In this document: in pieces, positions 7,659-63,300 of the stretch
How positions within the stretch are numbered: position 1 is the first letter of the stretch
How the letters are laid out: each line of letters starts with the position of its first letter
Source: Klebsormidium nitens
Lineage: Eukaryota > Plantae > Klebsormidiophyceae
DNA: 64,000 nt
Assembly: GCA_000708835.1 (NCBI GenBank)
Contig: DF236957.1
Coordinates: forward strand, 372,001 to 436,000
Reading direction: 5' to 3'
Made by a program: the position numbers and the translations under genes
The notes under the pieces: generated by a model
What the model saw: the letters and a program-made list of their open reading frames with translations, nothing else
Databases searched by the model: none
What the model was told of the DNA's origin: nothing

Positions 7659-8930
7659 TTACACGCCTGGCTCACAGAATGCCTTGAACCAACTATTGAC
7701 GGTGGCAGTCTTTCCCAGCAATCGCGTCCGCGTCTCGCGATGGTCATGCCCAAGCCAAGGCGCGTCGAGCGGCACAATACATCGGAAGAAGGTCACGGAG
7801 CACTGAGCGCCGCAAAATTTCTTCCCCTCATGTCTTTCGTCCTCAAGGATGAGGATTTTTGACTTGAGCATACTCTTTGGCACTCGTAGGCCGCAACTGC
7901 GGATCAAAGCCGCAAAATGGGGCCTAATGACAACTTCGCCCCGACAGACAATGAGCCGCTCCAAATCCGGACACTTGCGAGACAGGTCAGGAATTGCCAG
8001 TGTCCCCCTCTCTGGAGTAGGGGGGTTTGTGGAGAATGGGCTCTCATAAAGCAAAAGATGGCGGAGCTTAGGACAATGATGATATGCATCTTGGAGCATG
8101 CATTCAGACGCCTCCTTGCCCCATGAGAAGATCTGCAATTTCTCAAGGTGTCCCAGAACAAGTGCAGGTTGAGAGGCCCCCACAAAGTACTCGTCGTACA
8201 TACATTGTACCTTCAAGGAACGGAGACTGCTGAGGCAGTCTGGCAGATAGTCGGACACGTCCGCTAGATTGTCAAAGCCTGTGTTCAATGCAAACTCCAA
8301 GCTAAGGAGACTGTTCTCAGATTCCCCTATGGGGCCCGCCCATGACCTTGGTGTCATCTTTTGCCAAGTGCCTCGAAGGAGCAGACTTTCCAGTTTGGGA
8401 GTGGCCCCTACGATGCATTTTATGATGGTATCAAACGTACAGCAGCTCCCCAGATCAACCTCCAATGATAATAGAGACTCTTCTGATGCAGCAAAAAGCT
8501 TAACTAGCTTTTCGAGATCGTACTCAGACCTGATTTTGGCCACCGCCTTGGTCCATTGCAACTTGGACACGGCAGGGAAAAGAGCTTCCCACGCGTCTCT
8601 TGCCACTACTAACTGAGATAGCTTTGGCCGAAGGCTGAGCTCTTCTGAGAGAGCCTTGCGAACACCCACTCCTCGAAGCGGCTTGCCTTGTTTCTCAGAG
8701 CCCTCATTGTCACTGCCGCCAAGCAGCAGGGTCTTGGAGCACCGCCGCAAACAGCCTCGAAAAGCTTTGTTGACCCTCTCCAGCTGTGTCAAGCACGATG
8801 GATCGTCTGCCACAGCTTTCTGCAAAATGCAGTCCAGGAGCTCCGGGCAGAGCAGCTCAAAATTGCTGTCAGTGGCTTGGTCATTCAACAGGCTCGCCCT
8901 CCTCCTCATGTGCGCTTGCCTACCCGCCAT
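7659..8930 (-). CDS. Intronless F-box/LRR (RNI-like) protein, 423 aa
   Basis: Uninterrupted ORF. N-terminal F-box-like FELLCPELLDCILQKAV..LTQLERVNKAFR, followed by LxxLxL repeats (PKLESLLLRG, LSSLRSLKVQC, CPKLRHLLL, CPDLERLIV). Confidence 0.72.
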   Translation of the reverse strand: MAGRQAHMRRRASLLNDQATDSNFELLCPELLDCILQKAVADDPSCLTQLERVNKAFRGCLRRCSKTLLLGGSDNEGSEKQGKPLRGVGVRKALSEELSLRPKLSQLVVARDAWEALFPAVSKLQWTKAVAKIRSEYDLEKLVKLFAASEESLLSLEVDLGSCCTFDTIIKCIVGATPKLESLLLRGTWQKMTPRSWAGPIGESENSLLSLEFALNTGFDNLADVSDYLPDCLSSLRSLKVQCMYDEYFVGASQPALVLGHLEKLQIFSWGKEASECMLQDAYHHCPKLRHLLLYESPFSTNPPTPERGTLAIPDLSRKCPDLERLIVCRGEVVIRPHFAALIRSCGLRVPKSMLKSKILILEDERHEGKKFCGAQCSVTFFRCIVPLDAPWLGHDHRETRTRLLGKTATVNSWFKAFCEPGV

Positions 8931-22848: not shown

Positions 22849-24026
22849 TGGGGCTAGAAGAGTACAGGAGTACAGACTTGCCAGTGTGTCCTTGAAGATT
22901 TACCCCCTTCTCATTGGTTCTTCTCTCACCTTGCGCTGTGGCTTACAAGAGGTATGGTTCTGCATGATGGAACCACCTTGTATCAATGCTCCTTATTGCA
23001 CTCGTTGAACATGACTTCATGCTTGCGATATCTCAGAAGAAAGAAAAAAGAAATCAAGTATCAATTGGGTTCTATCAGCCGCACAGTGTATAGTCCGAGG
23101 TATTGCTATCACATTATGGCAGTATGGCCGGATGTTCTTAGTCAGCTCCGTCGCACGCAATGCAGTATGTGGTGATGGTAAAAGTTCTTTAGTAGTCTCG
23201 CCCGGCGCTTGGCCACATCAGGCAGCATGGAGTGTGGCTTTCAGCGGATCCTGAATCTCTGTCGCACGCCATGCAGCCTTGCTGTAGTTGCAAATCATGT
23301 TCAGGACCAAATAAAGCAAACCTAACCAAAGAAGCAGGACATAACTCGAGCCCCCAGTCACTAAGTTCTTATATGATCAATCGGAGCCATTGGCAAAATG
23401 TGGCTCAGGTTTCACTGCAACGGCTCGGGGAAACCCAAATGATAAGATACCGATTGATGTTGCATTCCGATTGAAGAGCGAAGATATAGGGGCTCATTGA
23501 GTTGACGCCCACAGACCTATCTTCGAATCATGCACATGATTGAGTGCACCGTTAGATCATAGAGTGGTGAAGCTCCCCGTGTCATGGGCCCGACGGTAGA
23601 GCCCACCATTGTGGTCTGTCAGAACAACTAATGGGTTAAAAGTAAAGTTTGCCTACTGGTTCTTGGGTAACCGTTGATTGCATGATCCAAATCAATTGCA
23701 ACACGATAGACTTTATATGCATGATGACGTCACTAGGCCGCATGCAAGCTCCATGCGCCGGGCTTCTTGCTCATATTTGATTTGGGCTCAATGCAATCTA
23801 CCTAAGCATGTCACCACGTTGAGAATTTTGATGTTGGACACGCTATTGCATGATCGACTCAATGCTTTCAAAAGTGACCGGTTTGAAGAAAGAAACATCT
23901 AACTCGTCTTATAGGCTATTGCTTGGTATATACCATGCATGCTCGACCACTTCTGTTGTGATGCAAACCGCAGCTAGCCCTTCAATGAAGCCAATACAGC
24001 GGAAGTCTGGTTATCTCCGAACTTGA

Positions 24027-24147
24027 ATGGCATTGAAACATAAGGCTCGTTCGATTGAGAACGAGCCTTATGTTTAGGCTCATGCTCTGTGCAATCGTAG
24101 CTGTCAGAGTCGCTCGCTCTCGATCGAACCTTATGTTTCAATGCCAT
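24027..24147. repeat. Nested inverted repeats (foldback)
   Basis: Perfect 17-bp stem 24036-24052/24059-24075 with a 6-nt loop; a second 19-bp arm at 24129-24147 is the reverse complement of 24027-24045. Confidence 0.9.
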
Positions 24148-24606
24148 CATAGTGACAAGCACAAGCCTTCGAAATTCATCGACTCCACCTTTCAGCGTTC
24201 GACCTCGCGACTGTTTCAAGGTTGCCAGATTCGAACGAGCTGCGCTTTGTCTTAAATTCACCCATACATCTAGGGACTTCAGCAAACAAGACAGACTTTT
24301 AGGGCAGAATTCCACGGTATACGTATGCATGTCAGACGGTCAGACTAATCAGCTTGTCATGTAGTACCCGTCATGTATGCCATGAACTCCCGAACTGCTG
24401 TCATGCAGGCCGGGCTTGTCCTCTAGATTGCAACGCATGCCATGTTCCCTTGCTGTCATCATTGCTCTTTACATTTTGGTGGATTTTGGCGGACTTGCGG
24501 GTCACATGTCAAGAGCCTGTGGTCACTTCCGACCCAGATGCTCGTCAATCACAACGGGTCAACAATCTCAGCTAGCCAATAAAAAAAGAAAGAAACGAAC
24601 GCGGTC

Positions 24607-27051
24607 CTACTTGCGTAATCGTTTTCCTACTACCTTGAGCGCGGTAATGCATCCTCCCACCAACCCCGACGCAAACGACAGGAACGTCCGCCACAGCGTG
24701 GCCTCCTTGCGCTTTACCGTAACCGCATAAAGCAAGCCGAAACCCAGCATGGCATAACCATAATAGGCATAAACTTGGGTGGCCAACTCAAACCAGCTCC
24801 ATGGGTCTATTGCCTTGACGACATTGACCCCCCGGGAGTTCAATCGCATGTTGACGATTGCAATTTCAGACGGACCGCTGGGGTAGAATGAGATTTGACC
24901 GTCGAACGGCGGGAGGGTATAGATGGACTCCCCGGTCCCCGTTCTGTCCTGCACCCGGTATTGCCAGAGGAAAAACTCATCAGAACAAACGTAGCTTCAA
25001 CAGAACACGCATTGCAACACGATGTGTGCCCAAGGTTTGAAACTATATCAGTCCGATGCACCAGGCGCCAAGCCGTAAGATTGAAAAGAGGATCAGAACG
25101 AAGCTGACTGGCGACGAAACAAAGAAATGAGGATGGCAGTAAATTAGTGCATTCAGGCAAGCCCCTTCAGGTCAGGCCTACGTCCGCAAACCGGTCGACC
25201 TAACCGCTCTCTGTCGGTTCGACCTTTTCGTGTCTGCAATTAAGGCTGAAGCTTCAGCAATCATCCAACAATGTGTCACATCCGAACTTTTCCTCGGAAT
25301 CTGTTAAAAGACCCGGCTTTCGAATAATTCCTGAGACTCTAACGAGCGACCAATAGACCAAACAAAGTCAAATGGTGTCTAGCAGCCATGTGGGCCACTC
25401 GAATCTGGGCGATCTTCCAAACCAGCGAACCATCATATCCAGTTGCAGAGACCCCTGAAGCAAGAGATTATTGAAACCTGACCGATGTTCCGCTAGGTCC
25501 GATACTGCCGGAAACTTCCTCCTCAAGGATCGAGAGTGACGGGTACCGGCGACCACACAAGTTGGAAAAGATTTAGAGTCCTAAAGAAGCAGCTGAAGTC
25601 ACTCCTAACAAGAGGACTCACATGATTCTTGTTGAGATCGACCGAATCCATCAGGGACAAAGTCAAGCGCGCCTGTTGGGATAGAGGGAGCTCCTGGATG
25701 AATCGAGACCTGATGCTTGTAGTCTGGTTCGGTAGCGGCTCCGATGAGAAAGTAGACAAGAGGAAATACGTGCGCTGGAAGAGAGGGTCCGCGGGCGGTG
25801 AACGATACGTGAACGTAATCGAGAGTGCGATCGTATCCCCTATGTAATCGTCTTTCTTGACAGTGTACCCCGTAAGATTGTATCCGAAGCAGAGGCCGTA
25901 GTTAGTCACCGTAGTTTGAACGGGACAATTGCTGGAAACGACTTCAAACACCCGATCAGCCGTCCGACTGGCATTCCACATCAAGGGCAGCGTTGCGTTA
26001 TAATCAAAGGGCGGCGAGTCTCCGGAAATGAATTGGCAACTGGCAACAAATCCGTACAGGATGATGTCATCAAAAACGGTGCTTGTCGGGGTGGGGCAGA
26101 TATAAAAGTATGGGAGATTGATGTCCTGAGCTTCATATGCAGAAGAGATGGCAGGATGGTCGCGCGCCTGTCGCCTCTGCAGGGGGAGAACGGAAACTAA
26201 TCGGACTGGTCGTATGGTAGAGCATTCTGTTTCATTGGGATGATCCTTTAGCTCCTCTGCAAAGCGGGCGGGTTGTCTTGATGTTTAAGCGAGGCAACCA
26301 AGCGTGCTGTTACTCACGGCAGGTGCTAGCCTTTGCCTTGACACTCATGCATCCAGTCTTAACCGTGACTTAGGCAACCAGAAATATTACCCGAGATGCA
26401 AATCAGAGTCCAGAACCTTTAGGGGCTTAAGGTTATAACTTGGTATGAAAGAGGCCTTCTTCTACCGCTAGGCTCTCAGGTGCCAGGGGCATGTCAAAAG
26501 GCAACAAGAAGTACACAGATGTAAGTTAAACTCTATCGTTGGCTGCTCCACTGAGCTCAAGACTTGAACGATCTGACTTGCTCGAAGTGGGCAGATTAAG
26601 CGCGTGGCAATGTCAAGTAAAACCTGGCGGCACCGCTGGTTGATGGCTCCTATTATCCTGTGTAGGAGCAGGACCTACAGGGCTCCATTCCAAGTGCTGT
26701 GCAAGTGTAAGCACTTGAACCTCCTCAACAGTGCATTGACGCTATGGTGCTCCCATGGTACTATAAATCACTATCTGGGCACTTCTACTCAATCAGCAAA
26801 AATCTGAAAATTGGACCTCTTACAATGATGCATGACAGTGTCTCAGACGCATCTCAGACTGGGGCTGGATTCTAGAAGAGAGGGGCAGAGGTGCGCGCCA
26901 CAGAGGGGCAGATCGAGGCACTCACCCCAATGATATAGAAGATGGTTGGCAGCAATGGTAACAGCATTATGAAAACAAACGTTCTCCATGCGCAGCATTG
27001 TTCCTTGTCGCCTTCCACGTCGCTGGGGGGAAGCAGGCTGAGGATGCCCAT
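24607..27051 (-). CDS. Two-TM membrane protein with ~230-aa ectodomain; candidate PAC(TMEM206)/DEG-ENaC-superfamily channel, ~340 aa
   Basis: Exons 27051-26926, 26176-25622, 24948-24607; all phase 0, GT-AG. TM1 TFVFIMLLPLLPTIFYIIG; post-TM1 HPAISSAYEAQDINLPYFYICP; VTNYGLCFGYN; four NxT/S sequons; pre-TM2/TM2 AIVNMRLNSRGVNVVKAIDPWSWFELATQVYAYYGYAMLGFGLLYAV. The gene model is well supported; the family call is inferred. Confidence 0.72.
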
Positions 27052-27166
27052 TGCCAGGTGTCAGCTCTCAGTCCACCAATCGATTGGCACACCGCTGGCA
27101 AAAGGACTGGTGGATTCCTCACTTACCCAGAGTTTGAGAGTTCAGTCAATGAAACAGAGTCAATGG

Positions 27167-27320
27167 GTTCAATGAGCGTTGCCAGCAGGACTTTCCTGCC
27201 TCCCAATGAGCGCTGGCCAGCAGGACTTTCAATGAGCGCTGCAGGCCAGCAGGACTTTCAATGAACGCTGGCAAGCAGGACCTTCAATGAGCGCTGGCCA
27301 GCAGGGTTTTCTTGCCTCCC
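27167..27320. repeat. Short degenerate tandem repeat (~25-35 bp, about 5 copies)
   Basis: Core CAATGAGCGCTGGCCAGCAGGACTTT repeated with variants, just upstream of the 2-TM gene start. Confidence 0.85.
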
Positions 27321-27897
27321 AATATTGGCGTGACCTTAAGTTAGCGGACAGGCGCACTTCTTTGAGCCGCAGGACCCCAAACACTCAGCAGGCAAATGTG
27401 AGGCAAATATCAGCAGCTTCATTAAATAGTGATGGGGGGACGACTTGCAGCCAACCCGGAAACTTTGTGACGGGTTCCCAGCAGCGCCAATTCAGGCAGG
27501 CCGAGGAGAAGGAGGAGGAGCCAGGGCCCAGCGAGCTCGGGCTTACCCAGCTTGGCACTGGCAGCTGGTTAGACGGTCTCCAGATCCCGATTTTGAAATA
27601 CCGTACTGCTACGAATTTTCGGCAAAAATAAATAATAATATGTGCCCTCAGGCTTCAGCTGGAAAATGTTTTGGAGCCACAATGGTCGATCACGGTACTT
27701 TTTAGCGGGTAACACTAGGTCTGCCGAAAGGATAGGCGTCGAAGGTGCCGAAATCAAATAGCAGTACGGTATGACAAAAAATGAGTAAGGCCACGGACTC
27801 GGGAGTGCGCAAACGTCCTGCACAAGTACGACGGACGTGCACCAGCGCCTGCTTCAAAGTTCATATCGTACGGTACTAGGTAGGTACCACTTTAATA

Positions 27898-28311
27898 GGG
27901 CCTATTCAGACCAAAAGTTGGGTCAGCGCTCCACAATCGAGGTTTTTTGGCCAATTGCAAGGTACATTTCTCCGGGTTCTCGGTCACAAATCTGGTGTAT
28001 TCAGACCGGTTCTAGGTTTCAGGGTGAAAATTTGGGTTCCCTGCCACGTGGAAGCTGGGCCTGTCAACTGGATTCGCCGAGCGACGTCACGACTGGCACA
28101 GAGACCCAAGAATCGAAGAACCGAGAACCGAGAACCCGCCCGAATAGCACGTTCACGGGTTTCGACATTTTCGAGAACCTGGGTCTCCGAAAACAACCGA
28201 GAACCGAGTTCGGTCTGATGCACCGTCTGTCAACTTGGGTTCCCGATCGCGACCCAGGTTCTCCATTTTGGCTGGGGAACCCGAAACCCAAAGCTCGGTC
28301 TGAATAGGCCC
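27898..28311. mobile_element. Tourist-like (PIF/Harbinger) MITE, ~414 bp
   Basis: Perfect TIR GGGCCTATTCAGACC...GGTCTGAATAGGCCC; flanks ATA/TTA (TWA-type target, one mismatch); internal GAACC(C)/GGTTC sub-repeats; no coding capacity. Confidence 0.78.
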
Positions 28312-30345
28312 TTATTAGTATACCCGGTACCGTGCTACCGTACGTACCTCTTTAAAGTGTACCGGTCCGCTTATCCCGAAGGTTCGGGCTACAGTAAGTG
28401 CGCCTGACTCGGACAAGTCTCCGAGTCACACACTTGCAGCAAGACCGTACAACCGCGCCAGATGGCTTCCTGTCAGCACCCCCGCCTGATTCAACAAGAA
28501 AGCATATGATTAAACAAAGTACGGTACATGTGCTCCAAAAGAGTCTAAATCCGGGTCCCGCCGGCCGGCGCGTTTGACGTCGAGTCTGACAGGTCCACCA
28601 GGCGGGCCCCGGGGCTGCGCGTATTGACACTTTAATTTGACAGTCGGTTAAATCCGAGCACTGTGTATAGCTGCCTGGCTGGTTGAGTAGCCAGCCGAGA
28701 CTGCCCGGCGTCGGAGCCCGGCCTCTGGGCTCCTCGACGTGCCAGTCCGATTCCCGGCGGGTGAGTTGCTCGCACAGTGCACTGATCGGATGACGTCAAC
28801 GTCCTCACCGGTCACTGTAGCTACTGCTACCGTTCTGGTACATACAAAGTACCGGTACTACCGGTACCGATGCTACAGGGTTGAAGCACTGGGTAGTAGG
28901 TACTCGATCGATCCGACAAAGCAAGTGGCTCCAAGGAAGTTTCTGAACGCCAGCTTCAGCTCATCATATGGCCTCCCTTCCACTATTAATTCTAGCTGGC
29001 ATCCTTTCCTCAGGAACTCACCCTGCCACTAACTACATGGAGGCATTTCCAGGAAGGTCACAGCTCGAGTATTCTGACTTTAAATGCAAGTCACGACGTG
29101 CCCATCAGTGAGGCACTGCACGGAGCTGCTACAGCCAAACGCGCTTCACATACCGTATCAGACAGAGGCCGTGTCTTTCCATTACCCTGGCACAAGGAAG
29201 CCAGGGAGCCCGACAATGCACACACCCAGATAGAATATAAGGCTGCGGCTTCTGCGCCAAACGAACAAGGTACACAAGGTTGGGGAGTGAGCACTAGGAG
29301 AAAGAAGAGATTGCAGCACTGTATATAGTGACTGTGCTTCATTTCCCTGATCGACAAACCTCTCCTTCGGACACAGAACGAGCATCAACGCTGCTGAAAT
29401 CTTTCCCACCTCTACGCGGCTTTCCGACGTCTGTGTCATTTTGAAAAGACTGCAACAAAGATCGCACCCTGCTCTCGTTGAACGTGACTGCATTGCTGTT
29501 TCAAGGTAGCCAGGTGAGTCAGGGAGAGCGCATAGGATCCTTCAATGCAAGTATTTCTGGAAGGCTATCTTTCATTCAAACAACATAGGTCTCTGGCTAT
29601 GTTTTGCGTCCATCTCGTCCAAGACTTTCCATTCACCAAAATGCACCTGGAAGGGCTAAGAAGAATCCATTTTGGTGCACGTCTCACAAAGGACAGCTGA
29701 CAGCGGCTGGCAGAACAAAAGGTGACACCTTTTGGACTCATATGCACTTCTCGCTGGATCTGAGGCCCACTGCTGTTGGTTGTGCCAGGACACTGAGTAA
29801 GACCAGGAATGCAAGCTTCACCCTTCGTCAAGGTGGACAAGCTCTGTTTTCTGACTGAATCTACTACCGGTAGACATCTTCTCGGCAATCTAATCTTGCA
29901 GAATACATTCTGGCAAGCTGGTTCAAGTGAGGGAACAGGTAGCTCAGTCAAAAATGTTTATCTGGGCTTGCTGAAATTGGCTAGAGGCTATGGCTTCTTT
30001 GTTTTCTGTATGCAGAGTTTGGGCCCAGTCTGTGCTAGCGCCCAACAGTGCCCGGCACTTCCAAACCTCACTTATGTTCTCCAGCTATGAAAGGGAACAT
30101 GTGCATTGCCCAGAAGCATCACTTCTGGCAGCAATTAGTTCCAAAAATAACCCACCTCTGACAATGCTGGTCTTGCTGTCTTTCCAAACTCAAGCTATTC
30201 TGAACTGAAATGCTGAAGTCCAGGTTGGCTCAGGACATTCGAGGCCATTCTGCACAGCCTCAGGTTATACAAAACCCTCTGCCTCTTTCCCCGAGCTTCT
30301 TTCTGTGTTCTGACCGCCGTGCGCTTCCTGTTCACTCCTTGCAGA

Positions 30346-33049
30346 ATGGCTGCCCGTCAACTATCAATCATACGGCTCCGTGCCCTCCTTGGCCCATGCA
30401 TGGTTATCCACCTCCTGCACTCTGCTCGCATCGCGGCAGCTGTGGTTGGCACAGTCGACCCAGCCACCGGACTCCTACCTTACCATGGGGACAACGGGCA
30501 ATACATTACGTCCTCTGGGCGCGTCTTTGTCACCTACCAAAGATGCCCCCCCGGCACCTTCATCGCAAACTGGACGATTGGGCTGTCCATTGTGGAAGGT
30601 TCGGCGGGGACTGTTGCGGGGGCCAGGGTGAAAGTGGTCACTGGGCTCTCGGGCAGTTGTTTCACGATCAACCCGCCGGCAACCTTTGTGCGCCGGCTAT
30701 GGGGTTACGGCGTCGCTTTCGAGGAGGTGCAGAACGTCTCTGTTACTTTCGCGGGCGGAAATTCCGTTGCGGGGACTTCGTTCAACGGGGTCGACTACGC
30801 CCCCGGAGGGTTGGGTGCGCTTCTTGGGTTGGGAACGGCGACGTTTCCCCGGGCGACAGCCTGGCAGGACCGATGCCCAGACGGCTCTGCCATAGACGGT
30901 TACACTATAGGTTTGTATAACCCACCCTTGAGTTACGCAATGGATCTGGTTACCGTGCAGTTTTCATGCAGCGGGGTGGCGCAAACCACAAACAATGGGA
31001 ACGCGTTAGAGGGGCCCCGGCCTTGGTACCCTCCGGCTGCTGAGCTCCTTCCAATTGACAGTCTAGACGGGTATTCTAAAACAAAGTACCCGGTTAATCC
31101 AAGCCCTCCGGTTAGCGCTCAAGAGACCTGGCTCCCATGGCACGGAAAGGGCGATCGAGAACTCCTTGAGGCGACCCAGCTGACGGCCGACAACCTTCTT
31201 CTGTTCCAAACCCAGATCTGCCCGGTTGGCAGTTTCATGGCCAGCTTGCAGATTGGTCTTTTCGGCGCCCCCACTCCAAAGGTCACTTACATCCAGGCGA
31301 ATTGCTCCAACGCAACAACCGGCACGTTTGTGGCCCGCTTGCAGCCCCTAGCAGGCAACGACCGGTCCGGGTCAATCGTAACAGTGACCCTAAGCCTGGC
31401 TAACGCAACCCGGGTTAACGGGAGCACGTCCATCACGGCCGCGGGCTCTCACCCGAGCAGCCTGTTCGGGCTTGGCACGACGTCGATTTTGGGCAACACG
31501 TGGAACGACACGTGTCCGGACGGCCAGGTTTTGGACGGCTTCCAAGGAGTGTCCGGCGGTTTGGACACCGCCGTTCAGTCGCTCCGCTTCCATTGCTCCG
31601 CCCTCAACGCGACCCCCCCCGCCGCTAATGCGTCAGTTGTGCGCCAAATTGCGGGGAATCCCCCGGGCCCAGGCCCGGCCCCTGCACCGACCGCTCTTCA
31701 AAATGTGACCTATCCGTCGGCTGCCGTCGCGGAAGGGCAGATCTTGGACCTGCTCAACGAGTTGCGGGGTCAGCAGGGGGTGGTTAACCTAACCTCGACA
31801 CCGGTTGAGAAGTGCACGGCGGCAGCGCTGGCCCAGGCGCGGGGCCTGACGTTTCCGCCCAACTGCTCAAGGGTGGACCCGTATAACCCGTAAGTCGACC
31901 AACTCTAGTTCGACGATCTTGGCCGCAACTTTGCGGCAGAAAGGTCTAGTCGAACTTTTTGAACCGCTTTCGATTTGCTATTGTCAGCGTGTGCAAACCG
32001 CCGCCTGTCATTGATCTTCTTGGCTCCCGCTTGGCAACTCTCGAAGCTGCTGTCTCTGTTGCTCGAATCAGGAAGGCCTCTTCTTCACAGCTATGTGGTC
32101 TGACTTTTGTCTTCTTATCACCTGTGACAATTTGAATTGCTCAATCATAGCAATCGTAAAACATTTTTTTCATAAGCTTCTGGAAGGAAAGCTTCCTTTC
32201 TAGCACGCCTGGTGACGTAAAGGAGCTGCAGCCGTAATGCTTTTTGTCAGACATACAAAGAAGTGTTTCCTAATGGCGACTGAATACCAGTGGCCCTGTT
32301 CATCAAAAGACAAAAAACTGGGGCGTTATAGCATCCTCCGAGATACGTCCCTTTTGTACCTTCCGCATCTGTTCATCCAAGCAAAGTTGCTCCGAGATTC
32401 TGATCGTTTCGCCGCTCGCATTAGTCGTCGTGTTATCCGTTCAAGTCGCAGGGTTAGCGAACTCCGACTCAACGCCAACCGCGGCAGTAAGGTCTCGTCT
32501 AGCTAGAACAAGAAGTTACGTTCGAGAAGTTCACTTGGAAAGAAAGCAGGAGCCTCGCCTGCGTGCAAAGACCTTTCAGTGCACCATGTCGGAGTTTTAG
32601 GGCACAATCGTTGTTGAATCCACGAATCAATGCACCAGCTTAAGCTCCCGTCAACCATTACGTCTTTCCTATGGCCACTCTTTGGATTCAACGCTAGGAA
32701 CCGGGGCATCCTTGCTTTGCAGGCGTGAACACATGGAACGTCCGTTGAAGTGCCGTCGTACTGCATGTTATTTAAAGCTGATTGGAAAGTGGTCATTGAG
32801 CGGAACCGATCATGCGCGCGCAGGTTTCTCAACTGCCTCCCAAGCAAAGCGGCGCCGGTCCCGGAGAGCCTCTTCTGGCTGACGTATTGCGAGGGCCCGG
32901 CGACTCCGCAGGAGATCGTCGCGTCGTGGAACGAGCCGGAAATCCTGCCCTTTAGCACCACACTCAACCCCAAGTTCGTCAACGTGGGGATCTCCCAGGT
33001 GGGCGCGTATACCATCGGGATATTCACAAGTGCCTACCCTCCAGCCTAA
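30346..33049 (+). CDS. Secreted protein: signal peptide, two internally duplicated Cys-containing beta-prism/lectin-like modules, Pro linker and C-terminal CAP/SCP-like domain; ~589 aa
   Basis: Exons 30346-31889 and 32824-33049 join in phase 2 (CC|G). Repeated CPxGxF/CPDGxxxDG motifs. CAP-like QILDLLNELRGQQG..PATPQEIVASWN..NPKFVNVGISQVGAYTIGIF. Confidence 0.75.
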
Positions 33050-57675: not shown

Positions 57676-58710
57676 ATGTTTCCCTGGCTGTTATCCGCGA
57701 TCTGCTTCTTCAAAAGGCGGTCGAATCCTGTCATCACAGCATCGCAAAATGCAGCGCAGATTCCAAGAAATCAAGCATTGAAGCGGCCAAACGGCACAGT
57801 GATCGATACGGGGCGCGCAAAGCGACTGCGTTTGATGGGCTTTCATGGGATCAGTGAGTACGAAGAAGCAGTCGCCCCTAGAGAAAGTGCAGGTGATCAA
57901 ACCAAAGCGGAAGTCTTCGCCTCAGAGGCCTTCTACGAAAGGGGCGTAATCGCAGTCAAGGAAGAGCGGCGCGCAGATGGCTTTGAGTGCTTCAGAGGGG
58001 GGGCAGCTTTAGGCAGCGCCCGGTGCATGCTAGAGCTCGCGGCTTGCTTTGCCGAAGGCGACAGCTGTCCGCAGGACGTGATAGCCGCGGTCGCTCTCTT
58101 TAACCAAGCCCACAATCTCCCTGGTTTCGCTGAAGTGCTTGGGGCCGAGCTCGCTCGGGTGCAATACAAACTTGGCAAGAGTGCTTTCGATGCCGGATCG
58201 ATCAAAGCGGTGGAGTTCTTGACAGCCGCGGCTGACTATGGGCACCCAGGCGCGCAATATGAACTGGGTACTTTGCACGAACTAGGCTGGGGGGTCGAGC
58301 GAAATATGGACGAAGCAATCGTCTGGTGGGGAAAGGCAGCCGACCAAAACGACCTTCTCGCGCTCTACAAGCTGGGAGAATGCCATCGCGATGGCAAAAG
58401 AGTTGCCCGAGACAGCGCAAAGGCAGCTGCGCTGTTCAGTAGGGCGGCCGAACTAGGACACGTCAGCGCGGGGTTTGAAGTGGGATGGTGCTACTTCACA
58501 GGATGGGGCGTCGCTCGCGACTTTGCGGAAGCGTTCCGCTGGTTTAGGAAGGCGGCGGAACAGGGCGACCGGACAGCGCAGTCTCTCGTGGCTTACTGCT
58601 ATCGCTCTGGGACCGGCGTGACCAAGAACGTGGAGAAAGGACTCGCGTGGTCAAAAGGGCGGGGGAAGGGAGGTTCCGTTCGAGAGCAACGGACAATGAC
58701 GGAATGCTAA
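57676..58710 (+). CDS. Sel1-like repeat (SLR) protein, CDS intronless, 344 aa
   Basis: About five SLR units (e.g. GHPGAQYELGTLHELGWGVERNMDEAIVWWGKAADQ). A probable 5' UTR intron (GTAAG about 57620 to CAG 57670) ends just before CCACC-ATG. Confidence 0.88.
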   Translation: MFPWLLSAICFFKRRSNPVITASQNAAQIPRNQALKRPNGTVIDTGRAKRLRLMGFHGISEYEEAVAPRESAGDQTKAEVFASEAFYERGVIAVKEERRADGFECFRGGAALGSARCMLELAACFAEGDSCPQDVIAAVALFNQAHNLPGFAEVLGAELARVQYKLGKSAFDAGSIKAVEFLTAAADYGHPGAQYELGTLHELGWGVERNMDEAIVWWGKAADQNDLLALYKLGECHRDGKRVARDSAKAAALFSRAAELGHVSAGFEVGWCYFTGWGVARDFAEAFRWFRKAAEQGDRTAQSLVAYCYRSGTGVTKNVEKGLAWSKGRGKGGSVREQRTMTEC

Positions 58711-60343: not shown

Positions 60344-63300
60344 TCACACCTTCCTGGTTTTGTTGAAGATCCGGAATGCGAGGACTGCTAGGGCTTTGAA
60401 CAAGAGAGTGAACGCTATCAAAGCCAGTAAATCATAGCCCCGCCGGCTGTAGGTCAAGTTCTGCAGATCACAGCAAAACAGAAGTGTCAAGGTCTTTCTT
60501 CGAGACAACGACAGCCTTGTCAACAGCCATTCGGCGGTAGTCGTTACGAAGATAGTAAAGAGGAACATAAACGCCCATTGAGGACAAACTGTAAGGCTGT
60601 TACGAATAATTTCCCAACACCCAAAAGGAACATAGAGAGGGGAAGGAGCAGAACACATACGAAATGCACATGCTTCGTCACAAGCTCACAACCTGCCAAA
60701 GCGAAGAGAGCCGACGACAACGTAAGACTACAGGACGGGGGAAAGGGTCTCGCATTTAAACATTCTCCCTGCATTACCGGCATCAAACAGTTCTTCCTTC
60801 AAGCGACGGGACGAGCCTTCGTGAATCGCACTTGTACCCGTCTCTAAGCGATAACGGCAGCAAACGAGGGATGTAGAATAGAGTTATCGCACTCACCCAT
60901 TCTCCCTGCACAACCGGCCATGTGATCCGGTTAAAGTTCGGATGGTCCAATAGCCGCTCACAGCGGCACTGGGGGCACGCGTTCCCGTCGATGAGGCAAC
61001 CCGCAAGAATGCAGTTCGGCGTGCTAGTGTTGCAGTAAAAGGCGACACTAGCGAGACAGTTGAACGCGTACTGGAGCGGGTTAAGCCAGAAAAGCCAGAC
61101 GTAAAAGTCGGGGATGTTGGCGCGGTTAACGAGGTAACCCGAGGTTAGGCTCCAGAGGGTGGTGAAGAAGGTGAGGATGAGCGCGGCGACCTGGGGAGGG
61201 TTAAGAAGAGGGTTAGGGCGAGACCACGAGGGACGGCAAACACTCGGGGGGTTCAGCAAAAAGATAGGAACGATTAGCAGCGACAAAGGGACTTTGGGTA
61301 GCTGCAACATTTCCTCGAATGGAGACGCTGAAGAGAGCAGGGTACAGAAAAGATGACGATGGAATCGAACAAAGAAAAGAACGCCCAGAGAAGGGAGAAA
61401 GGCTATAAGGATCATGATGTTGTTTCTAACCGGGGCAGGTAGCGTGCATCTCACAAACTTGGAAGACGAAGAAAGGCTGGTGTACAATGAAGCCACATGT
61501 ACCGATCTCGGGTGGCTTTGAGCAGTTTTTTGGGCAGTGCGAGATGCATCTAGACTGTTAGCGCGCTCTTCACCAACGGAACCAAGCACACTAGATGCAA
61601 GAACTAGATGCAAGTCATAGACCAAAAATTGTTAAGCGCTCGAACTTTACCTTGGCGTTGAGCGCGACCTCGGCCACAAGCAGCCCGAAGTAGACCATGG
61701 CCAGGGTGTAGAGAAAGACGGCTGCGAGTGACGTCAGGAAAGTGGTGCCTGACGTCAGCGCGATGTCAGCCATGCCGTAGACGATGATGGTGAAGATGAA
61801 AGACGTCACCAGCAGGAAAGGCAGCTGCAAGAGGAGAAGGGCATCGTTAGGAGGGGGGTTACGGATAGGGTCAAATGGGCTTTTGGGAAAGGCCGAGTCC
61901 GTGGCCCAAGAAGACCTGCCACAGGGACACCCTTAATCCCTACAAAGGTCGACCACAATCACGCGGTTCCTCACAGGCTGCTCGAGTAAGGAAATGGACA
62001 ATATATTGGGCTCAGAGTACTGTCTGCTCGGCCTAGAGGGTTGTCAAAGCAATAAGAGTACAGGGAAGCAAACGGAGGATGTGGTCGGCAAAATGGCAAC
62101 TCCATTGTCTCAACAACGATACCAGGCGGGACGCACTTGGGCAATGAGAGGGAGTCAGCGAAACGCTGCGGTCTTCAAAGTGCAAAACAGCGCAATCTCA
62201 ACAGCACCACCCGATGCTTTTGGAACCACAAAGGCTGCATCACGGATGTCAAACTAGGACCGCCTCAAAAGAAGATGCGCCCACCTCCGCGAAACCCCAG
62301 GCGAGGCTGTAATTGAGCGCGCTGTAGGCCGACACGTGGCGCTCTCGCAGGTACATGGGCTGCTCGCGGTTCCAGGCCATCACCACAAACACCGCGTTCA
62401 TCAGGCCGAAGAGTAGCACGGCGAGGTAGATCACTCCGACACGTGACACCACGCCGGAGGTAGTGTCTTGGCCAACCTGCGTGGGAGATAGCGAGTGTCA
62501 AGCCAAATGTATGGGTTGTGGAAAACAAAGTCAAGAAGTGAGTTTCCAAGGTTGAAGAGCACAAGAAACGACGAGAACCGAGCCGGAATTTGTGTCTGGG
62601 TCAAAATCTGGAAGGACGTATAGAATTTGAAAGGACAGTGGTACGGAGTTTGAGCAAAGAATCTAGTTTCGCATTTGTCAGCAGAATAGCAGCACAGACA
62701 GGTGTGTCGCGCTCCCGCGTGACACAATGTCGTAGCGTGTGCCTTGACCAAGCTACAGAAAAGATGCGCTGGCGTCAACAGGCACATAAGGGGTGGTCAG
62801 AAGGAGCACCGAAGCTACAGCAGATCTCACCTTGAAGCAGAGCGAGCCCAGGATGAGCGCGAGTAGGATGCCCATGAGCGCGCGCCCGAAGCTGTTGTTC
62901 ACGTTCCGCCAGAAGGTGCGCACCGCGCGCTTCGTCACCTCGCCCTGCCGCCGCCAGGGGGGCGCCGCATAGCCCTGCCAAAAAGTCAGCGGAATGACGT
63001 CAGCAAAACGCCTCCTTAGGGGCCCGTCCCGGCACAGACGCATCGAAGTCGTCTGAATGCAAGTTTGTCATCAGAAATGCCCCTCCCCGCCATTATTGCG
63101 GTCAGTGTCTCTACTTGATACAATTCCAAACGGTGCCTTTCGAACTTGCTTCGACTCTCATGAAGGGCGTATGACCCCACGAGAATCGCTGTCATCCAAC
63201 AACTAAGAAGGTGGAGCGTTTCAAAACAAGATACTTCAAAGCTGAAGAAAAGGCGGAAGCACACGGAAAGCGATGGACCGACCTCTTCCGAAAAGTCCGG

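Follow-up and report, generated by a model that had tools for sequence, protein, structure and literature searches.

An expressed orphan gene of Klebsormidium nitens encodes a predicted two-pass membrane protein with a weak likeness to PAC and ASIC/ENaC channels

The Klebsormidium nitens gene KFL_000080480 is real, spliced and expressed, and its product, judged by its sequence, is an orphan. We read this product, tentatively and with a probability of roughly 0.4, as a very divergent two-pass outer-domain protein, whose build is nearest to PAC and ASIC/ENaC among characterised proteins and which may work as an oligomeric sensor. Its kinship to these channels is unproven: what links it to them is a weak, low-confidence likeness, not family membership. 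The gene itself is thus well founded, whereas the channel kinship is so far a lead.

Results

Gene model and expression

The coding sequence is made of three minus-strand exons (27051-26926, 26176-25622 and 24948-24607), which encode 42, 185 and 113 residues plus the stop, with every joint in phase 0, donors GTGAGT and acceptors CAG. This rebuilt model of 340 aa agrees with the three phase-0 exons and about 340 aa that an earlier note on this DNA had deduced. The spliced product is identical, letter for letter, to GAQ78142.1 / KFL_000080480 of K. nitens, which the database already annotates with exactly the same exon model as a hypothetical 'transmembrane protein'. The features are listed below in the order of transcription, with positions in the window, i.e. 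the whole stretch of 64,000 nt that was analysed.

24479..27562, minus strand: transcribed unit (mRNA span), from contigs of X9, X11, X15 and X19
27052..27562, minus strand: 5' UTR of about 511 nt, from contig coverage, with a 26-nt tandem repeat and one uORF of 28 codons, whose ATG is at 27422
26926..27051, minus strand: coding part of exon 1, residues 1-42, with acidic N-tail, conserved Cys19-Cys20 and predicted TM1
26177..26925, minus strand: intron 1, 749 nt, GT..AG, joint in 4/4 runs
25622..26176, minus strand: exon 2, residues 43-227, with most of the predicted ectodomain, its four conserved Cys and the sequons N102, N110, N142 and N192
26123..26158, minus strand: post-TM1 motif HPAISSAYEAQD, residues 49-60, local match to human PAC 98-109 (His98 region)
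24949..25621, minus strand: intron 2, 673 nt, GT..AG, joint in 4/4 runs
24607..24948, minus strand: coding part of exon 3, residues 228-340 and stop, with the last predicted ectodomain strands, predicted TM2 and basic C-tail
24479..24606, minus strand: 3' UTR of about 128 nt; contigs end at 24479-24502

Both splice joints are carried exactly by assembled transcript contigs (Logan) of four runs from four studies, including the joint of exon 1 (TM1) to exon 2, for which the earlier note had proposed confirmation by RNA. The joint 26176|26926 omits 749 nt and the joint 24947/8|25621/2 omits 673 nt, and their ends read CT..AC on the plus strand and hence GT..AG in the direction of the gene. Contig depth was 25-61 in the exons versus 2-7 in the introns, and coverage was zero beyond about 24479-27562 (checked in 23800-24400 and 27575-28300). 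In-frame stops are located directly upstream of the ATG at 27051, which has a good start context (GGCAATGG), and GC3 of the gene is 0.64 versus 0.49 in its introns.

Relatives and profile searches

Besides the protein itself, word searches retrieved a sole relative, an orthologue of K. subtile that is 56% identical along 98% of the length; the queries were exon 2, the full protein and the profile of the two sequences. When exon 2 was compared exhaustively by HMMER with 1.84 billion representatives, nothing beyond KFL_000080480 itself came up. Conserved peptides and a degenerate DNA pattern for 'PYFYICPTP' found no relatives in viral, prokaryotic-genome and metagenome collections, and tblastn gave no paralogues within the window. 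No Pfam family, including ASC (PF00858), TMEM206 (PF15122) and P2X (PF00864), was matched at E <= 10 by the separate exon pieces, the whole protein, its ectodomain or the orthologue, so that the profile comparison with these three families, by which the earlier note had wanted its channel assignment checked, did not bear the assignment out. ERGIC_N (PF13850) and COPIIcoated_ERV (PF07970) were likewise without match at E <= 10. Searches of the PDB by phmmer/hmmsearch with the protein, the two-sequence profile and two motif-segment profiles retrieved no PAC, ASIC or ENaC chain; their marginal matches (KCa3.1, E 2.3; 3os7, galactose mutarotase-like, E 0.021; Nup188; FimG) were judged unrelated. 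By every sequence criterion, the Klebsormidium protein is placed outside the PAC, DEG/ENaC and P2X families.

In the literature, we found no paper on KFL_000080480 and nothing on look-alikes of PAC or DEG-ENaC in plants, algae or fungi. PAC/TMEM206 has been reported from vertebrates and one hemichordate only, with no paralogues (PMC6663466), and sequence searches have traced DEG/ENaC no further than holozoans, a single alveolate and a single stramenopile (PMC10507113). These reports are consistent with the statement of the earlier note that such channels have not been described in streptophytes.

Protein layout and conservation

TM1 is predicted at about residues 22-42 (26926-26988; hydropathy up to 2.18 over residues 24-42), and TM2 at about residues 276-304 (24718-24804), followed by a basic tail. 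The ectodomain between them (about residues 43-275, about 235 aa) carries Cys 69, 89, 126 and 138 and the sequons N102, N110, N142 and N192, and this segment is sheet-rich in every model. Thus, the layout described in the earlier note, a short N-tail, TM1, a beta-rich ectodomain with four Cys and four sequons, TM2 and a basic C-tail, is present. A third hydrophobic stretch (residues 315-335) in the K. nitens protein is absent as a conserved feature in the orthologue, and therefore we favour two TM helices. Directly after TM1, the flank is basic (RRQAR), at odds with the positive-inside rule if this loop faces outward; therefore, the two-pass topology is a prediction only, and this flank speaks weakly against the orientation assumed here.

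The K. subtile orthologue keeps all four ectodomain Cys and three of the four sequons. Identity between the two species is 64% in the ectodomain, 38% in TM1, 45% in TM2 and 28-38% in the tails, the best conserved stretch being residues 61-145 (73%). The C-terminus is wholly different between the two proteins, and Arg307-Lys308 at the TM2 boundary is conserved in both. There was no significant conserved helical face on TM1 or TM2 (p 0.26 and 0.15, respectively). As a separate observation, helices that are conserved less than the ectodomain are unlike what is expected of pore-lining helices, which counts against a channel.

Local motifs

The motif of PAC that the earlier note had given was found to be exact (human PAC residues 98-120, confirmed in 7jna). 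It aligns best at the post-TM1 site, the topologically equivalent place, in both Klebsormidium proteins. The score of this short match was 30 in K. nitens (p 0.04), for which the motif had been picked after inspection, and 40 in K. subtile (0/2000 shuffles; next-best site 10), whose protein was not part of that choice. The match follows the pattern 'HP..S..Y...D'. A motif-segment profile of this post-TM1 region gave no significant match PDB-wide and no PAC chain. The residues 'HPA[IV]S' after TM1 are also reminiscent of the post-TM1 'FPAVT' motif of DEG/ENaC. Another segment, 'GLCFGYN', is invariant in K. nitens and K. subtile and was compared with '...G.CYTFN', presumably the conserved beta-ball motif of ASIC; its segment profile retrieved no ASIC or ENaC chain from the PDB at E <= 10.

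Structure models and language-model neighbours

AlphaFold2 gave pLDDT of 39 with the single sequence and 34 with two sequences, and these models were unusable; a shape search of the ESM Atlas with the first of them (TM <= 0.25) was meaningless. The Atlas's own ESMFold model of the protein is of low confidence (pLDDT 0.51) and is not independent of the language-model features. This low-confidence model gave TM 0.59 by query with the representative of an arthropod ASC cluster over 275 residues, helices included, 0.54-0.62 with Mucoromycota clusters, 0.49/0.46 with TMEM206, and 0.44-0.49 by query with two ERGIC_N/COPIIcoated_ERV clusters over 215-228 residues, the last being about equal to PAC.

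By language-model features, the nearest neighbours of both orthologues were unnamed Mucoromycota two-TM clusters with scores of 0.94-0.96 (206-218/256 features), and Y80K_N, a ciliate family (PF27811), scored 0.92. TMEM206 was among the top 30 of 7.7 million clusters for both orthologues (0.88 and 0.86). HMMER detected no sequence-level link to the Mucoromycota clusters or Y80K_N, nor did Pfam, whose profile set may lack PF27811.

Discussion

In the reading that we prefer, the Klebsormidium protein would be a membrane glycoprotein built as a hairpin, whose two tails lie in the cytosol, with an outer domain held by disulfide bonds and a likely palmitoylation site at the conserved Cys-Cys before TM1. 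It may belong to an unnamed, very divergent group of eukaryotic two-pass proteins, mostly from Mucoromycota fungi together with the ciliate Y80K_N family. Within this group, the build of helix, beta-domain and helix would be closest to trimeric PAC and ASIC/ENaC among characterised proteins. The most likely action is predicted to be that of an oligomer, whose outer domain senses an external signal and relays it to the two helices. Protons are the obvious candidate for this signal because of the conserved His-Pro just after TM1. PAC and ASIC both have a beta-domain of 12 strands placed between their two TM helices, and yet are not homologous in sequence (PMC7904269), and therefore the lack of sequence matches in our searches does not exclude a PAC/ASIC fold. 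If such a build is true, the architecture of the trimeric channels would be ancient and widespread or would have arisen more than once, and the protein would be a new candidate in the plant lineage for sensing external pH or ions, in a subaerial alga near the water-to-land transition. A further-reaching version, in which Klebsormidium, Mucoromycota and ciliates have in common an unrecognised branch of PAC/DEG-ENaC-type trimeric two-helix channels and KFL_000080480 is a proton- or ligand-gated channel, seems unlikely to us; if it holds, the origin of the channel architecture would move far outside animals.

It is quite possible that the protein forms no pore, that its beta-rich outer domain does the work (for example in adhesion, in binding to the wall or matrix, or as a receptor or enzyme-like protein) while the helices anchor it, and that the likeness to PAC/ASIC is a coincidence of topology. 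The distribution of conservation is in favour of such an anchor, with 64% identity in the ectodomain (73% in residues 61-145) versus 38% and 45% in the helices and 28-38% in the tails, and so are the lack of a conserved face on TM2, the lack of a sequence-level tie to any channel family and the marginal PDB profile match (E 0.021) to 3os7, which has a beta-sandwich sugar-binding fold. On the other hand, one helix would suffice for an anchor and two are present, the invariant His-Pro after TM1 matches the proton-sensor site of PAC, TMEM206 ranks in the top 30 of 7.7 million clusters with either orthologue, and the superposition of the Atlas model on ASC extends over 275 residues and takes in the helices. 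If the two passes do no more than anchor an outer domain, the protein would be an ordinary lineage-specific orphan. The TM scores with the two ERGIC_N/COPIIcoated_ERV clusters (0.44-0.49 by query, 215-228 residues) and the equal layout, in which two helices with short tails enclose a luminal domain of ~230-250 residues, raise another reading, an early-secretory two-pass protein like ERGIC/Erv41-Erv46, which would have a luminal beta-sandwich and serve as a cargo receptor that cycles between ER and Golgi. This is improbable: these scores are below those for ASC and the Mucoromycota clusters, both Pfam families are without match at E <= 10, the ERGIC/Erv families are missing from the top language-model neighbours, and the tails have no conserved sorting motif, with a C-terminus that differs wholly between the species.

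The strong reading of the earlier note was a true descendant of DEG/ENaC or PAC, acting as a channel for Na+ or Cl- that is gated by protons or a ligand. It draws on the same language-model and Atlas neighbours and the same PAC motif match as the reading that we prefer, and on the likeness of 'HPA[IV]S' to the DEG/ENaC 'FPAVT' motif. However, there is no profile match to ASC or TMEM206, the 'GLCFGYN' profile retrieves no ASIC or ENaC chain, HG and G-x-S are absent, and the ectodomain, with its four Cys, is too small for finger, thumb and knuckle; such direct descent is very improbable. A chance ORF or a mis-annotated non-coding transcript could account for the confinement of relatives to one genus and for the poor structure predictions. 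This explanation is effectively refuted by the exact splice joints in four studies, the orthologue of K. subtile (56% identity across 98% of the length, the Cys and motifs being invariant), the GC3 of 0.64 versus 0.49 in introns, and the good start-codon context with stops upstream.

Comparison with known systems

P2X receptors (PF00864) have ten conserved ectodomain Cys; the Klebsormidium protein differs from them in having four and in giving no P2X profile match. The hallmarks of DEG/ENaC are HG before TM1, the G-x-S (GAS) filter in TM2 and an ectodomain that is rich in Cys and has a thumb and a finger. When the 340 aa were read directly, there was no His-Gly in the N-tail and no G-A-S or G-x-S in TM2, in agreement with the earlier note, which had remarked on the absence of the GAS selectivity motif. 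Two TM helices around a beta-rich, probably disulfide-bonded ectodomain are, as predicted for Klebsormidium, common to both, but the DEG/ENaC ectodomain has 14 or more Cys instead of four, and that of Klebsormidium is about 150 residues shorter, with no room for thumb, finger and knuckle. The ERGIC/Erv41-Erv46 proteins (PF13850 + PF07970) are similar to the predicted layout in being two-pass with a luminal beta-sandwich of similar size, whereas the Klebsormidium protein is without profile match, without language-model proximity and without conserved sorting signals in the tails.

PAC is a trimer with an acid-activated Cl- current and with a Lys (K319) that faces the pore where TM2 nears the cytosol. 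It differs from the Klebsormidium protein in the acidic-pocket Glu107, which is opposite an Ala in the latter; in addition, the Klebsormidium TM2 is weakly conserved, and sequence homology is undetectable by Pfam and PDB searches. On the other hand, the two are alike in length (340 aa here and 350 aa in PAC) and in the predicted order of a short N-tail, TM1, an N-glycosylated ectodomain of ~235 aa (sequons here), TM2 and basic residues at its cytosolic end. The proton-sensor His98 of PAC lies in the TM1-beta1 linker, and His49-Pro50 of Klebsormidium, invariant in both species, aligns with His98-Pro99 at the motif level only, with matches of Ser, Tyr/Phe and Asp beside it. The systems nearest to the Klebsormidium protein are the Mucoromycota clusters and Y80K_N, both by language-model features (0.92-0.96, 193-218/256, for both orthologues) and by structure of the low-confidence model (TM 0.53-0.62 by query).

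Gene model and transcripts

KFL_000080480 was rebuilt on the minus strand; both introns begin with a GTGAGT donor and end with a CAG acceptor, and the spliced product has 340 residues. The rebuilt model confirmed what the earlier note had observed of the gene, namely three phase-0 exons giving about 340 residues, of which the default ORF display shows only fragments.

Parts of the gene (window positions)
up to ~27562, minus strand: 5' UTR, ~511 nt, from RNA contigs
27051-26926, minus strand: exon 1 coding part, rebuilt, phase 0
26176-25622, minus strand: exon 2 coding part, rebuilt, phase 0
24948-24607, minus strand: exon 3 coding part, rebuilt, phase 0
down to ~24479, minus strand: 3' UTR, ~128 nt, from RNA contigs

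In-frame stops lie immediately upstream of the ATG (27051), and GC3 is 0.64 in the coding sequence versus 0.49 in the introns. An identical annotated model already exists: the spliced translation equals database protein P0001 (GAQ78142.1, 'hypothetical protein KFL_000080480', Klebsormidium nitens), the sole match of an exhaustive search. The guess of a green-lineage, streptophyte origin was right. UniProt A0A1Y1HKJ2 names the product 'Transmembrane protein', and our literature search found no paper mentioning KFL_000080480.

Sequence from the locus occurs in 20 public runs from seven studies. For the splicing check, contigs assembled from four runs, each of a different study, were placed on 23800-28300. 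Both joints, 26176|26926 (skipping 749 nt) and 24947/8|25621/2 (skipping 673 nt), were present in 4/4 runs, and the skipped segments end in CT..AC on the plus strand, that is, GT..AG on the gene's strand. Transcripts therefore join exon 1 to exon 2 and match both predicted junctions exactly; one contig (run X15) spans all three exons. Contig depth was 25-61 over exons versus 2-7 over introns, and within the placed region there was no coverage outside ~24479-27562. The run records are silent on type, but the two joints, the depth contrast and the bounded coverage identify the runs as RNA. Parts of both introns (25024-25547 and 26148-26955) lay under low-depth contigs (depth 2-8) in three of the four runs, which fits pre-mRNA or partial intron retention.

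The 5' UTR contains one upstream ORF of 28 codons starting at 27422 and a tandem repeat at 27204-27305, in which a 26-nt unit (consensus CAATGAGCGCTGGCCAGCAGGACTTT) is present 3.8 times with 86% matches. About 330 nt past the transcript 3' end, and free of RNA contig coverage, lies an inverted repeat at 24027-24147 with 38-nt arms, 84% complementary and 45 nt apart. Within this repeat sits a perfect hairpin of 17 nt (24036-24075), and the whole may represent a small MITE-like element.

Other open frames in the window
57676-58710, plus strand: 344 aa, Sel1 repeats (PF08238, E 4e-39; three strong matches)
60786-61625, minus strand: matches the ABC-2 type transporter membrane domain (PF01061, E 7e-9); probably one of the exons of an ABCG-type gene
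30319-31893, plus strand: 524 aa, no Pfam match at E <= 0.001
7659-8930, minus strand: 423 aa, no Pfam match at E <= 0.001

Protein layout and conservation

The 340-residue translation has the layout described in the earlier note, with both membrane helices predicted.

Layout of the protein and identity to the K. subtile orthologue
residues 1-21: N-tail, acidic; conserved Cys-Cys pair at 19-20; tails 28-38%
residues 22-42: TM1, hydropathy maximum 2.18; 38%
residues 43-275: ectodomain, Cys 69, 89, 126 and 138, sequons N102, N110, N142 and N192; 64% (73% over residues 61-145)
residues 276-304: TM2, Tyr- and Gly-rich; 45%
residues 305-340: C-tail, basic

The sole relative found was a K. subtile transcript product of 359 residues (56% identity over 98% of length). 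All four Cys of the ectodomain are shared with it, as are three of its four sequons, and the invariant blocks are HPA.S, D-I-.-LPYFYICPTPT, FDDII.YGF, SNCPVQTT and GLCFGYN.TGYT. We read two helices because a third hydrophobic stretch (residues 315-335) is not conserved in K. subtile. The two-pass topology is a prediction, and the basic flank after TM1, RRQAR, fits an outward-facing loop poorly. Between the two proteins, no conserved helical face was detectable on TM1 or TM2.

Family searches and motifs

At E <= 10, Pfam gave no match for the exon pieces, the whole protein, the ectodomain or the orthologue. The ASC, TMEM206 and P2X profiles, which the earlier note had suggested as a check, failed along with ERGIC_N and COPIIcoated_ERV. 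Exhaustive phmmer of the exon-2 part against 1.84 billion cluster representatives returned only itself, word-seeded searches with the whole protein or a two-sequence profile found nothing beyond the two Klebsormidium proteins, and nothing related turned up in viral, prokaryotic or metagenome collections. PDB sequence and profile searches retrieved no PAC, ASIC, ENaC or P2X chain; their top match was a marginal galactose mutarotase-like beta-sandwich (E 0.021). By sequence, the product is an orphan restricted to the genus.

The PAC sequence given in the earlier note is exactly human PAC residues 98-120 (7jna and other entries). When this 23-mer was scanned across both proteins with shuffles, both aligned best locally at the site that follows TM1, at H49 of K. 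nitens (score 30, shuffles p 0.04) and at H53 of K. subtile (score 40, shuffles 0/2000), with a next-best ungapped site of 10 in both. The K. subtile protein, unseen when the motif was proposed, adds Ser and Lys matches, giving H-P-x-x-S-x-S-[YF]-K-x-x-D. In PAC, the segment carries His98, the proton sensor, and Asp109, a residue of the acidic pocket. The match is suggestive but short and was chosen post hoc; its pairwise expectation is estimated at roughly 0.1. Profiles of the post-TM1 segment (E <= 10) and of the GLCFGYN segment retrieved from the PDB no PAC chain and no ASIC or ENaC chain, respectively.

Predicted fold

AlphaFold2 models were unusable (mean pLDDT 39 without alignment, 34 with the two-sequence alignment), both placing strands centrally and long helices terminally, and a shape search with the first gave noise only (TM <= 0.25). 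ESM Atlas language-model neighbours agreed between the orthologues, queried independently. The Atlas holds its own low-confidence model of the exact K. nitens protein (pLDDT 0.51, pTM 0.42), and its neighbours and the language-model ones are mutually non-independent views.

ESM Atlas neighbours (TM against the Atlas model, pLDDT 0.51)
unnamed Mucoromycota 'transmembrane protein' clusters: language-model score 0.94-0.96, 206-218/256 features; TM by query 0.54-0.62
ciliate family with Pfam domain Y80K_N: language-model score 0.92; TM by query 0.53
TMEM206 cluster: ranks 23 and 30 of 7.7 million clusters, scores 0.88 and 0.86, features 171 and 169; TM by query 0.49, by target 0.46
ASC cluster: TM by query 0.59, 275 residues aligned
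two ERGIC/Erv clusters: TM by query 0.44-0.49

On both views the product looks like the general class of helix, beta-rich domain, helix, and within that class they do not tell apart a channel of the PAC/ASIC type and a luminal sandwich of the Erv41 type.

Interpretation

We tentatively favor (probability roughly 0.4) a hairpin membrane glycoprotein from a two-pass family that is unnamed and has diverged deeply. Its nearest characterised look-alikes are the PAC and ASIC/ENaC channels, and it would probably act as an oligomeric sensor or channel. An outer-domain protein anchored by two helices with no pore is the main rival and a real possibility, since selection keeps the outer domain and not the helices. 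A cargo receptor of the ERGIC/Erv kind is unlikely, as the sequence does not place the protein in that family. Less probable still is that the protein truly descends from DEG/ENaC or PAC and has classical channel function, a reading which the sequence likewise fails to support; tested by sequence, the product belongs to none of the PAC, DEG/ENaC, P2X and ERGIC families. The channel interpretation of the earlier note is a candidate reading.

On direct reading, the product lacks the DEG/ENaC hallmarks, namely the HG motif before TM1, the Cys-rich thumb and finger, and the G-x-S filter in TM2. DEG/ENaC sequences are reported from holozoans, one alveolate and one stramenopile (PMC10507113), and TMEM206 is stated to lack homologues outside vertebrates and a hemichordate (PMC6663466). 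PAC and ASIC have a core fold in common without sequence homology (PMC7904269); therefore the lack of sequence matches, though no evidence for that fold in the Klebsormidium protein, is compatible with it.
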